Under the pieces are notes generated by a model. That model was not told the DNA's origin. It saw nothing but the letters and a program-made list of their open reading frames with translations, and did no database searches. Below, piece by piece: positions 20,902 through 26,607 of a stretch of DNA of 64,000 bases (positions within the stretch are counted from its first letter, which is position 1; the number at the start of each line of letters is the position of its first letter). Source of the stretch: Trichosphaerium sp. ATCC 40318 (taxonomy: Eukaryota; Protista; Tubulinea); contig JALMLS010000062.1 of assembly GCA_038496445.1 (NCBI GenBank), positions 674,870-738,869 of the forward strand, given 5' to 3'. The translations under genes and the position numbers were made by a program.

Positions 20902-23900
20902 TTAATGTATAGATGCATCTAGATTGGCAAGGTGATCACCAATCTTTGTTGCAAGTTCTTGCACGTGAGGTTCAAAAACAATGGAATAATGGTCGGAATC
21001 AGTGTCGATAACATTAACGACAGAACAAAATTGATCCCAACCAAGTGTAGTGGAGTCTAATAGAGGATCCTTTAATCCCTAAATGGCGATTATTACAATC
21101 GATAGAGGAAGAGTGAATGTGTACCTTTATAGAAGCTTTTTGTTTGCTGCGGAATAGGGTTACAGATCCTTTGTACAAGGACGAAGGGTTATATTTTCTT
21201 ACTAACAATTCGCCGTCTAAAATATCTTTTTGAAATCTAAAGAAGAACGAGGCGCCGACAACAGGATCTATCTGTGATAACGCATCGGCTTCAATAGCCT
21301 TTTTGAATACATGTGCTAGCCGTTGATCAGGTCCTAACCCTTTCACGTCGCTAAAAAACCAGGTTACTATATGCTAACGCTAAGGGCTCACTTGAGCTTA
21401 CCTGTAATTAACTTCAAGCTCAAATCCTAAAAATTGCTTGGAGCCTGACATGACGATGAGCTTAATACAAGATAAATGGATTCATATTGATACCTTTGCA
21501 CAGTGTACACAATACTGCTGCGTCCAAATCCAAGTCCGCTTCTGCTGCTGCAGTGTATATAGGTGCTCTACCATCCAGAAGCGCTAGCATATCGACCTGT
21601 ATTCCCGCTGCTTGCTAACCGATACTGTTAGGATAAATGCATCACTTGATGTAGTCCGTACGAGTTGTCGTGCCATCTCATAGGCTACTGTTGAGCCAAA
21701 CGACCAACCGCCAATCTAAAGCCGTCAATACATAAAGATCAAGTGTTGTAGTACCCTGTATGGTCCTGATTTTTGTACTTCTTTAATGGCCTTGATGTAG
21801 TCACTTGCCATGTCCTCGATAGAAGTATAATCCCTCCTGAATTTGGTATTTAGCAACTATGTGGCATTTGAATGGCTAATGTACTAACCTTGGTTCCAGA
21901 CCATAAAATGGTTGATCGCTACCAAGATGAAACGCCAAGGCACCAAAACAGATGGCTGTCTTGAAGGCAGGATGCACAAAAAACAAAGGTGGCTTCGAAC
22001 CGGTTTTCTAGAAAGCGTACAATATTAGCCACCAAGAAAGTGTTGACTTATTTTTGTTCGTACAACTAGTGGCACGAGTGGTGTTGTTCTAGGTGCACTG
22101 CTGCAAGAACACGAATCCTTTATATTACCGCTTTTAACGCCTGCACTTTCATCTACCATGCTTGCTAGCTTCTTGACAGTTGATGCCGAGAACACCGCAG
22201 AGAAAGGAAATCTGACACCAAACTTGGCCTCGATACTGCCCATTAGAGAAACGCCCATAAGCGAATTACCACCAAGTTCAAAGAAATCATCCTCTACACC
22301 TACTCGGCTCACCTGCAACACATCTATTTATTTGGATTAGATCAAAAATAACTTGAACTAAAAAAGTACCTTGGAATATTTGTGCTAGTGCAACTTCAGT
22401 GGCAGTTTGAGGCACCACGTAATCCTGTAGTCTCGTTTTTTCAGGCACAGGAAGCGCTTTTCTATCCACCTTACCATTCTGTGACACAGGCCATGTATCG
22501 AGTGTGACGTAGTATGATGGCACCATGTACATTGGCAAATACTTTTTCAAAAACAACTTCAAAATTGGTCCTACAATCAAGTTAGCAAGCAACTCTTTGA
22601 GGTGAACACTGATTAAAACTTGCCAATATTGGGTGAGTCTACATTCTTGTTGAGTATGAGGTAAGCTGCCAAGTACTTCTCTCCACCAGGTTGATCCGGT
22701 TCTCTTGCCATAACGATACATTCGTTAATTGCTTCGTGTTTATAGAGTACGTTTACAATCTCTTCGAGTTCTAAACTTAAATCAAAACAAAACTTGAAAA
22801 AGCGCACGTGATTTAATAAAAGTACCTATGCGGTATCCTCTAATCTTGACTTGGTGATCGACACGCCCTAAAAATTCCAAGCGACCATCTGCCATGTAGC
22901 GCAAGACGTCACCAACACGGAACATGCGTTGGTATTGACCTTTAAGCGATGGAAAAAACTTTGCATACGGGTTTTCAATGTACGACGCAGCTGCAACGAT
23001 TAGTTCTTACCAAAAAAAAAAAGGGTATCGAACTTACCAGTTTTTGCAGCATCAACATAGCCTAAACCCACTTCCACACCGCCAATATAGAGTTCACCAG
23101 GTACACCTCTTGGTACTAACTGTAAGTGATCATCTAGAAGCAAGAAATGTGTATTATCCACAACACCGCCTAGAAACAATGACATGAGTACTCTTTGGTG
23201 CAAAACAATGAGTTACCAACTGGAATAGATGACTTGTGCGTGTCGTCATCAACTATGCGCAAGGCACTTGCCCAAACAGTCGTCTCTGTCGGACCATAAA
23301 GATTCCACAATGACTTGCACTTTGGTAGGAGCTGAGCTGCCAAATGACATGTCATTGCTTCGCCTCCACACCATATATTCAAATTCTCTGCATCACCTTT
23401 CCACCCTGCTGCGAGCAGCATTCGCCACGTGGCTGGTGTGGCTTGTAGTATTGTGATTGGATTTACAATTCTGTTTTGTTCAAGCACGTCAAGCAGAGCA
23501 ATGCCATCACGTCTAACAGCAGTTGACACCATCATAATCGATGCGCCACAAGTCAGTGGTAGCAAAAGCTCCTAAGTGTGAATCAATATTTTGTACAAAA
23601 TATGTGGCTAAAATGCATAGTAAAGAGCCCTTACCAATTGTGCGATATCAAATGTAATAGCGCTGACACAGAGAACAATGTCATCTGAATTCATTCCTGG
23701 GCTTTTGCGAATAAATTGAAATTGGTTTACGACTGCTCTGTGACAGATACGCACTCCCTAGAGAGGATTGAGCTGCTGATCCTTATCACATAAACAAAAG
23801 TGAACGACCACGTACTTTTGGTTTTCCTGTAGATCCACTTGTAAAAATAATATACATGAGCTGTTCGGAATCTACAGGTTCTACAGGAACAACCTAAAGA

Positions 23901-26607
23901 AAAGGCAATAAATACCTTTTTTGTCATCTTTAACGCCGCGTACTTTTTTAGCGTCCATTGACGCTATACCCTCATGGTAGGAAGGTGTATCTACAGCAAT
24001 AATGGTGCATGAGGAGGAACCATCCGGCCCAAAAAGAGTTTGTGCGTGTTTAGTCTCAGTGATGATGGCACTCACGCCAGCGTACTATGACGGCATTAAT
24101 ATCGTTTGGCACGTGCCAAATATTGATAATCTACGTACATCAATTATATACTTTACACGATCCAATGGTGTCTTTAATTCTAAAGGAACGTAGGCAGCAC
24201 CAGCTTTGATGATACCATAAATTGCAATGAGAACAGCTTCGCTTCTAGGCATGAAAATAGCGATTTTATCGCCAGCCTTGACACCTTTCTTTAAAAGGTA
24301 GTTTGCAAATTGAGTTGCACGCTTCTGAATTTGCCTGTAGGTGATTTGCCTGTCTTCAAAGCTAATGGCAATTTTATCTGGTGTCTTTTCGACTTGAGCA
24401 TCGACTAAAAGGGCCATCAGGTCATCCATGGAACGAAAAAAAAAAAAGGGGATGTAGCGTACTTAGTTCTTCAATCCTACTTTCTTGTGCATAAGGCACA
24501 GGTGCTGGGTTAAAGTCGACAATCAATCTTCGTTGCTCGTCTTGTGTGAGCATATCCAATGTATTAACACAAGTCTCGCTGTTAGCAGAGGCCATGCTGT
24601 TGAGGATATTTTTATAGTAATTTGCCACTCTTTGTGGTGCATCTTTCTCAAAAAGATCCAGCGCATAATGCACAGAAATTGATGGGTTGCTTTCTTTGGA
24701 GGAAATGGTTAAATGCATCGCATGACTTAGTTTTTCTGGATCGTTCTCTTTGTCAGATAGTAATTGGACAACACTGGAGAGCATTGGCGTATCCCTTGAC
24801 ACCTGACTAAACTCGTGCAAATCTCGTAGATCATATGTGCCAACGTGTTTTCGTGCTGTGTCCAGGGAAGAACTGAATCGTGCAAGCCAGGTGAATAGCA
24901 GGTTGTCCTTTATTCTATCTGTTTTGCCAACTTGAGAAACAATAGGTGCAACACGTTCATTTACTCCTCGGTATCCAAACAAAACTGAACTTTCTCCTGA
25001 ACATCGAGATAAAACAATAGACCATGCACCCACCAAAAATACTGATAAAGGCAAAGACAAGCGAGAAGCCATGGAAGAGAGTTGTTCCATTCGTTCAGCA
25101 TCCAAAGAGATCCGAATACTGCCTTTTGGATCATACTCTTTTGTAAAACAAAAGGGTTAATTGGGCGTAGTTGGGATGTATTGTACCTGTTGTTGCGTCT
25201 AGTCGCATGCCTAGCAAGCTCGTAGGTGCTTCAAAATTTGCTAATTGAGACTGCCAAAACGCATTGGTTGGAGAGTCTGTAGAAGCGACATTAGATAATT
25301 CAGGGTTACCATGGGCAGCGACAACTTCACGTCGCCTATCTGCCTGAAATACGTTTGACAGAAATTTATCAAGCTCTGAGAGTGACAACTCTCCATTCAT
25401 TATCAGTTCCAGCATATCTTTGAGCTGTGGTGTATCTTCCATAAATCCATTGTATTCTCCTAAACGAAAAAAATGAACATCAAGTCTTCCAAATAACCAC
25501 AACGTGCCGTCCACCATGCCACGTAAAATATCGGGTTGATTAAAAATGCGTTTGACAGACTCTAATTGTAACAGTTGAGCCATTAACCCAGGTCGTTGAA
25601 TCAGATCATACATCAAGTCTGTGAATGGAACTTCAGCGCTATTTTCAATCTTGATTTTCCATTAAAAGACATGTACACACGTGATGGGTGCGCGTACTTG
25701 CAAATCTTTTGAATTTTTTTCACACGTGATCAAATTATTGCGAAGAACTTGGCTTAATTTGTTTTCGGCGAATAATTGCTTGATAGCTAAACAGTGCTCT
25801 CCAATATCACGAACAGCTCGCATATTTACTAATACGTTTGGAAGTGAACCCTTTTTGTGTACAAGTTAGAACGACACTGCAGCACTTTGTGAAAAATCCG
25901 GAAAAGATGTAGCGTGCCATCGGTTTCGCGTGCATGACGTGTACTAGCCGAGTGCCCTTTTTATCTGGCGTTGGCGTGATATAATACCCAGAACACTAAA
26001 TAAGGTGATGAGAAGAAAAACATGGTAATGTTAAAAAAAAAAGATTACGTACGAGCACTTGAGCACGTGTTACACCTGGTGGTACAGGTAGCCAAGCGTC
26101 AGTTTCTGTGGCGTCAACAGAACGTGATAGATTTATCCATTCGTCTACCAGAAAAAAAAAAACAGTTAGCTAATTGTGTAGAAACAAAGTGGTTGTGTAC
26201 GAGGAAATAGTTGTTTTGTAGTCTCCATGACTATAACATCCCTATTTGATAAAGGCGAAGGCAGTTCATATTGATAGTACATGACACGTTTAAATTTATC
26301 AATTTGCTGTAGCATGTCGAGTTTTATGCAGCGATTATCAACAAAATTAACAAAATTCAGCGCTGACACCAATGAAATTACATCTGCTACACAGCAATTG
26401 AGTGTGACCTCTCCTTTAACGATATTGGGTTGGTCCTGTGGAGATTATTAGCAAATGTAGCAACATACAATTAGTTCTCACTTTAACACGCTTGTAGAAC
26501 ACATCTACGCTCTTAACTTTGCGAGAGCGCTTCCAACTGCCCTTTGAAGGAGATTCTGTTGCCAACTGCCACAAGTACTTTTCAGTCACAGGGATTGTTT
26601 TAGCCAT
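20902..26607 (-). CDS. Single-module NRPS-like protein: START - STI1-like linker - half C domain - A - PCP - TE
   Basis: START motifs [24 protein letters not shown] and KPM|GSLP. C-lobe motifs FWQSQL and [19 protein letters not shown]-domain cores [47 protein letters not shown] and [13 protein letters not shown] motif [13 protein letters not shown] motifs GWSFG and DHYS. The START-to-C junctions were checked and splice in frame. Confidence 0.9.

Follow-up and report, generated by a model that had tools for sequence, protein, structure and literature searches.

This report describes a gene located on the minus strand of a 64-kb window from Trichosphaerium sp. ATCC 40318 (64,000 nucleotides of contig JALMLS010000062.1, assembly GCA_038496445.1, positions 674,870 to 738,869). 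The window is the whole stretch of DNA that was analysed. All coordinates are positions in the window; residue and codon numbers refer to the spliced model of 1493 amino acids (aa). The gene encodes, in this order, a START-type domain, a helical linker, the C-terminal lobe of a condensation domain (C*), an adenylation (A) domain, a peptidyl carrier (PCP) domain and a type I thioesterase (TE), i.e. a module of a nonribosomal peptide synthetase (NRPS) preceded by a domain predicted to bind lipids. This gene joining START to NRPS, and its architecture, are real with a high degree of confidence. The activity proposed for its product is the transfer of a glycyl group to a lipid bound by START (probability of about 0.3-0.35); which acceptor is used, what START does and what is produced are inferred. 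The same domain order in one gene had been reported by a first-pass annotation of the window and is now supported by the gene model, RNA joints and homology.

The gene model was obtained by three-frame translation of the minus strand, short open stretches being joined at GT-AG borders and, in two cases, at GC-AG borders. The coding region starts at ATG 26607, with an in-frame TAG (26613-26611) just 5′ of it, and ends with TAA 20904-20902; the start codon, the in-frame stop upstream and the limits 20902-26607 are identical to those given by the first-pass annotation. Many of the introns carry a CTAAC-like branch site. The GC content at third codon positions is alike in the three parts of the gene (START, 0.40; linker, 0.34; NRPS, 0.37). 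No second copy of the gene was seen within the window. One frame stays open through the 25 exons. The earlier manual splicing needs a correction for a GC-AG intron of 48 nucleotides (nt) in the linker (25507-25460), which is in-frame and stop-free and is therefore invisible to a reading of open reading frames (ORFs). Since this intron is spliced out in RNA, 16 residues of the raw frame are absent from the protein. For the second GC-AG intron (22571-22623), which is predicted, a weaker in-frame GT-AG alternative is present; the frame is kept with either.

The window stretch is present in four public runs, coded X1 to X4. Contigs of X1, X2 and X4 (three runs, two studies) carry joints whose ends are CT..AC on the plus strand. 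This corresponds to GT..AG for a gene of the minus strand, and these contigs thus represent spliced RNA. Their joints coincide with 15 of the 24 introns of the model; loose contig ends at 25995 (exon 3/4) and 22773 match two more exon junctions. All introns of the TE region (7/7) are seen in RNA. The X1 joints 25649/25698 and 25458/25507 have equal depth and probably belong to a single contig. They connect exons 6 and 7 with the last exon of START, which encodes the C-terminal helix. Transcription and correct splicing of the gene are observed in two labelled organisms.

Contigs are absent from 25178-25376, so that the exon 7/8 joint (25187/25137) is the only junction connecting the two halves of the gene, START and NRPS, that lacks RNA support. 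Two separate proteins could be made if intron 7 were retained: START and the linker, ending at the stop that unspliced exon 7 meets at ~25134, and an NRPS initiated from an internal Met in exon 8. Such a split is very improbable, as the homology with condensation domains starts ~26-33 residues before the exon 7/8 junction and crosses it in register. Alignments obtained with phmmer between the spliced N-terminal 660 residues and 150 NRPS proteins start at residues 339-346 (exon 7) and extend to ~659. In a profile of condensation domains (465 positions; 401 complete sequences, namely the L060 seed and 400 phmmer matches of the C* exon), positions 198-280 correspond to residues 347-429, gapless over the junction (residue 372/373). 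The gap in RNA is therefore bridged by colinear homology; it is also unremarkable, since the contigs are short and sparse everywhere. Furthermore, the borders of intron 7 are of the GT-AG type, promoter space for a second gene is lacking, and the closest entries to exon 7 in the ESM Atlas are Condensation fragments (score 0.86, a lead only).

Residues 1-215 are assigned to a START-type domain, predicted to bind lipids, from matches in Pfam, PDB and the ESM Atlas and from a paralogue. In a single-exon scan, exon 2 matches positions 74-118 of Pfam START (PF01852) with E-values of 0.008-0.015 and 15-16 bits (cut-off, 22); the other short START exons, also scanned singly, gave no Pfam START match. 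The best PDB match of exon 2 is STARD10 (E 0.12), over the conserved YY..P.PL.NRDVI segment. With exon 2 as query, 53 of the 60 nearest named clusters of the ESM Atlas are START (top score, 0.97). The paralogue is a stand-alone START-like gene located upstream of the fusion gene. The two START sequences show 30% identity over 100 aa (BLASTP, E 2e-15; global identity, 26%) and have the NRD.IVME and CSGY motifs in common. Their intron positions differ; the duplication, if any, is thus old. One exon of the paralogue has a weak match in the Bet v1 clan (Polyketide_cyc2, E 0.036), and its largest exon has no match in PDB. A sequence search with START exon 2 for relatives of the fusion gave no candidate.

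The A domain, the PCP (GGNSL Ser) and the TE (GWSFG and DHYS) named by the first-pass annotation were all recovered as Pfam matches on the exons and as motifs, with an intact TE triad. The A domain is complete and includes the core motifs A3 (ten residues, at codon 751) and A5 (YGPTE) and the equivalents of Asp235 (codon 796), Trp299 (codon 867) and Lys517 (codon 1100). Its pocket code, deduced from an alignment with bacterial relatives, is DILQWGLVWK. The code of the nearest bacterial relatives is DILQLGMIWK, which is reported for A domains that activate glycine (PMC12283262); DILQLGVI is assigned to glycine (PMC5466765). Glycine is thus the likely substrate of the A domain. The phosphopantetheine serine of the PCP is Ser1154 in GGNSL (22264-22262), which conforms to GGxSL. 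The TE triad consists of Ser1292 in GWSFG (21703-21701), Asp1319 (21575-21573) and His1465 in DHYS (20991-20989) and aligns with that of bacterial homologues. The TE lid (residues ~1339-1400) is ~20 residues longer than in bacterial homologues, and the linker between PCP and TE has a Ser/Cys-rich insert. Both features could bear on the access of an acceptor.

In C*, the N-lobe of the condensation domain is lacking. C* matches the condensation-domain profile only at positions 198-280 and 387-464 of 465, the condensation domain of McyB in PDB over residues 241-474 (E 8.6e-10), and Pfam Condensation over positions 378-455 of 456 only. This agrees with the C-terminal half of a condensation domain recognised earlier (profile span, 198-464). 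HHxxxDG is absent from the fusion protein; a forced alignment puts E-L-I-M-N-G-E opposite this motif. The protein does not contain a catalytically competent condensation domain, i.e. both lobes with HHxxxDG. The retained lobe is probably a structural platform for the A domain only. A phmmer search of 1.84 billion representatives with the C* exon found no orthologue among the 150 matches listed, all of which are giant multimodular NRPSs (22-34% identity); these best 150 matches are dominated by summed multi-domain scores, which could hide weak single-domain orthologues. No close relative of the C* exon was found in metagenome contigs or among proteins of 124-392 aa.

The helical linker had been labelled STI1. 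This label is weak: the only family match in the linker is that of exon 6 to UBQLN1 (PF23195), which is below threshold (E 0.008; 16 bits; cut-off, 27), and a comparison of the linker with PDB gave no meaningful match. The linker was also considered as a worn N-lobe of the condensation domain. MAFFT hinted at matches to PF..DL..GPL and to the HHxxxDG region; the corresponding scores were reached by 85 and 245 of 1000 shuffles, and this candidate was rejected as unsupported.

With exon 13 of the A domain as query, 514 relatives (up to 58% identity) were recovered from metagenome contigs, and tblastn of the spliced model found 44% identity to bacterial A domains over 500 residues. Bacterial ORFs of 1360-1380 aa, which are complete single modules with condensation (C), A, PCP and TE domains according to Pfam, show 32-37% identity to the fusion protein from the condensation domain to the TE, over 950-1135 aa. 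The best solved match of the A-domain exon searched is AB3403 (PDB 4ZXH/4ZXI; E 1.4e-25). This free-standing termination module (C-A-PCP-TE) was crystallised in the presence of glycine and AMP; in such a module the condensation domain makes up a stable platform together with the A core, while the N-lobe is where the module's own (acceptor) carrier domain docks (PMC10510592). The NRPS core is of bacterial origin and derives from C-A-PCP-TE modules resembling AB3403. The fusion protein has thus retained only the lobe of the platform; START and the linker stand in the place of the other lobe, which bore the active and docking sites. At the expected position of HHxxxDG, the closest bacterial C-A(Gly)-PCP-TE relatives (L061, 7877-11956; L024, 2664-6800) read L-H-T-x-x-A-D-E-W-S, a motif that varies at the second His and at the Gly; their condensation domains are otherwise complete.

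A size-limited protein search with exon 13 gave one match that does not look bacterial (P0151, 75% identity). P0151 was located on L081 (2.5 kb, 1-2502; Logan SRR11047594 contig 15176) and on L082 (516 nt; ENA ERZ778017 metagenome contig). L081 has a GC content of 62% and encodes model residues 593-1111 in pieces (31-76% identity). These coding pieces are in different frames, and L081 is thus intron-bearing; it shares an intron position with the fusion gene at residue 918/919. Its pocket code is DILQWGMVWK, with the unusual residues W299 and V330 as in the fusion protein. This intron-bearing relative indicates that the NRPS lineage is present in at least one other eukaryote.

The sequence from X2 has no differences from the window. 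Those from X1 and X4, which correspond to a close relative, differ from it at 13 listed coding positions; 11 of these substitutions, some of which lie in the linker and in the condensation-domain remnant, are synonymous. The fusion gene is under purifying selection. The loss of half of the condensation domain, together with an insertion of 1 nt at position 24480 in a low-depth contig of the related organism, could be taken as signs of a decaying, functionless relic of a horizontally acquired NRPS. This is very improbable given the excess of synonymous substitutions, the transcription and correct splicing in two labelled organisms, the catalytic residues of A, PCP and TE, all intact across 1493 codons and 24 introns, and the conservation of W299 and V330 of the pocket in L081, a distant GC-rich eukaryotic relative. 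The insertion at 24480 lengthens an A-run by one base towards the end of exon 8; it is found in one X1 contig (depth, 4) and would be a frameshift in the relative. It is most likely an assembly error.

In the explanation preferred here, the fusion gene is a transcribed nuclear gene of an amoeba-type protist, in which a bacterial glycine-activating C-A-PCP-TE termination module gained 24 spliceosomal introns. The N-lobe of its condensation domain, including HHxxxDG, was lost, and a START domain of host type followed by the helical linker took its place. According to the mechanism proposed, the A domain would adenylate glycine and load it on Ser1154 of the PCP; the glycyl group would then move to Ser1292 of the TE. 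It would be released to a nucleophile other than water, most likely a lipid hydroxyl or amino group that START holds or delivers, which would yield a glycyl-lipid by a tRNA-independent route. An external acceptor is expected because the condensation centre is lacking and mere hydrolysis of Gly-S-PCP would waste ATP in a futile cycle. A lipid held by START is suggested as this acceptor because the lipid-binding domain is covalently attached. The transfer of an acyl group by a TE to an external hydroxyl has a precedent, FrsA (PMC7794379). Among the natural products of tRNA-dependent enzymes are aminoacyl glycerolipids as well as sterols bearing a glycyl or aspartyl group (PMC8913301, PMC7334510, PMC10580965).

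Several points weigh against this transfer to a START-bound lipid. The assignment of START by sequence relies on single exons with scores below threshold, and the DP.G.(I/L)P region of START is divergent. Tryptophan at pocket position 299 is unusual, and glycine is predicted by similarity of codes only. The exon 7/8 joint is missing in RNA, as described above. L081, the only related eukaryotic contig found, stops where the A domain starts, short of the N-terminus. The flanking genes tested are of housekeeping types and do not form a biosynthetic cluster. Lastly, START could equally be a regulatory or targeting device.

In this last case, START would be a lipid sensor or a module targeting the protein to a membrane or organelle, and would thereby switch or localise the synthetase. 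The product would not be a lipid conjugate: the TE would pass glycine to a soluble acceptor, or would oligomerise or cyclise it. The START of Them1 allosterically modulates the attached thioesterases (PMC10663673; bioRxiv 10.1101/2020.02.18.954917), and in the fusion protein START lies at the chain end opposite the TE, with a linker of ~130 residues before the NRPS core. The parallel is a loose one, since the HotDog catalytic domains of Them1 act on lipids themselves, and neither a pathway for a soluble acceptor nor a partner gene was found nearby. This explanation is somewhat less likely than transfer to a START-bound lipid. Both roles of START, presentation of a lipid acceptor to the TE and gating of the synthetase, had been proposed in the first-pass annotation.

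It is unlikely that the amide or ester is formed away from the TE, either by a free-standing condensation enzyme acting in trans or at a new site between START and the C-lobe, where Gly-S-PCP would be joined to a fatty acyl donor or an amine, the TE then releasing the product (e.g. an N-acylglycine). The donor carrier site lies mainly on the lobe that was retained, and the ancestral carrier docked on the lobe that was replaced (PMC10510592); in addition, free-standing condensation domains reportedly make fatty acid amides in gut bacteria (PMC13310621). On the other hand, no catalytic His motif is left in the fusion protein, and the trans partner is hypothetical and unlinked.

Glycyl transfer by the TE to a lipid held by START is the reading preferred here. 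The protein consists of known domains in a combination that was not found described: neither a description of a START-NRPS fusion in the literature nor orthologues of START or C* in exon-sized sequence searches were found. The statement of the first-pass annotation that no NRPS with an N-terminal START is known to be described agrees with the outcome of the literature searches; the sequence searches that bear on it covered exon-sized queries. The exact look-up of one exon ORF in public assemblies returned no record. In the NRPS papers found, "start domain" appears to mean starter modules. In its boldest reading, which is less likely than not, the fusion protein would be the first NRPS with a built-in START and a tRNA-independent system of lipid aminoacylation in a eukaryote, in which the TE would esterify or amidate a sterol, phospholipid or ceramide extracted or held by START. 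To our knowledge, all known lipid aminoacylation (MprF, LysX, ErdS, ErgS) uses aminoacyl-tRNA. If the proposal is true, the fusion protein would be an independent solution for lipid aminoacylation, and assembly-line enzymes would have a further means of recruiting hydrophobic acceptors. The gene is also a clean case of a bacterial megasynthase module domesticated in a protist: intron-rich and under purifying selection, with its catalytic residues kept and a host domain in the place of its condensation centre. The hypothesis lends itself to direct tests with a protein of ~165 kDa, a predicted substrate (glycine) and point mutants at Ser1154 and Ser1292.

The features of the fusion gene and its neighbours are given in the table below. 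NUDIX and pseudouridine synthase genes are also found among the flanking genes tested. The neighbours related to lipids are PIP5K, the START paralogue and the Rce1-like protease. A Q/N/T/P-rich low-complexity open frame (20339-20794, minus strand) is found directly downstream of the stop codon of the fusion gene.

Table. Features of the START-NRPS gene and of neighbouring genes in the 64-kb window. +, plus strand; −, minus strand.
Feature	Position	Strand	Characteristics
Whole coding region	20902-26607	−	25 exons; 24 introns of 39-63 nt; 1493 codons + TAA; single open frame
START-type domain (predicted lipid-binding)	25755-26607	−	Residues 1-215; exons 1-5; NRDVIVME motif at codon 106 (26246)
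Helical linker	25266-25754	−	Residues 216-346; contains the RNA-confirmed GC-AG intron 25507-25460
GC-AG intron in linker	25507-25460	−	48 nt; donor GCACGT; in-frame; confirmed by RNA joint 25458/25507
C*, C-terminal lobe of condensation domain	24479-25265	−	Residues 347-592; N-lobe and HHxxxDG absent
Adenylation domain	22416-24466	−	Residues 597-1118; Pfam AMP-binding on several exons, AMP-binding_C
Second GC-AG intron (predicted)	22571-22623	−	Donor GCAAGT; CTAAC branch site; absent from the listed RNA joints
Peptidyl carrier domain	22139-22397	−	Residues 1125-1195; Pfam PP-binding, E 8.9e-14
Type I thioesterase	20929-22004	−	Residues 1222-1485; Pfam Thioesterase (PF00975) on exons 20 and 21
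Stand-alone START-like paralogue	32908-34037	+	8 exons; 268 aa; 6.3 kb upstream of the fusion gene
Cyclophilin	27049-27771	−	Pfam, single exon
PIP5K	31451-31717	+	Pfam, single exon
ALG11-type glycosyltransferase	35073-35696	+	Pfam, single exon
Rce1-like CAAX protease	18189-18581	−	Pfam, single exon

The systems closest to the fusion protein in domain order are AB3403 of Acinetobacter baumannii and the metagenomic L061/L067, L024 and L060 ORFs, which are also single modules with the order C, A, PCP, TE and a glycine-type pocket (DILQLGMIWK in L061). These bacterial relatives have a complete condensation domain (Pfam positions 5-456 of 456) and take an upstream donor, whereas the fusion protein has the C-lobe only (profile positions 198-464), carries START and the linker at its N-terminus and is encoded by a gene with 24 spliceosomal introns.

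Them1/ACOT11 (STARD14) and ACOT12 resemble the fusion protein in that START is covalently joined to an enzyme handling thioesters. In Them1, START modulates activity allosterically in response to fatty acids and lysophosphatidylcholine (PMC10663673; bioRxiv 10.1101/2020.02.18.954917). START is C-terminal in Them1, which has HotDog-fold thioesterases acting on acyl-CoA and neither an adenylation nor a carrier domain. The TE of the fusion protein is an alpha/beta-hydrolase of the type I NRPS thioesterases (PF00975), and the exons scanned gave no match to a HotDog family; the protein is not of the Them1/ACOT11 type.

FrsA, of the FR900359 pathway, is a monomodular NRPS that loads one residue, which its TE moves to the hydroxyl of a separate molecule rather than to water, by intermolecular transesterification (PMC7794379); a counterpart of this reaction is proposed for the fusion protein. 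FrsA differs by its active starter condensation domain, by its acceptor, a cyclic depsipeptide, and by the lack of a lipid-binding domain; the two proteins were compared by general NRPS homology only.

If the mechanism proposed is right, the class of product would be shared with ErgS and ErdS (ergosteryl-3beta-O-glycine and -aspartate) and with MprF and LysX (aminoacyl-glycerolipids) (PMC8913301, PMC7334510, PMC10580965). These four enzymes use aminoacyl-tRNA and a DUF2156 (GNAT-like) transferase, whereas the fusion protein would use an NRPS A domain and a carrier thioester. Neither an aminoacyl-tRNA synthetase nor DUF2156 was found by Pfam on the exons of the fusion gene that were scanned, and the protein is thus distinct from the MprF/ErdS/ErgS type.

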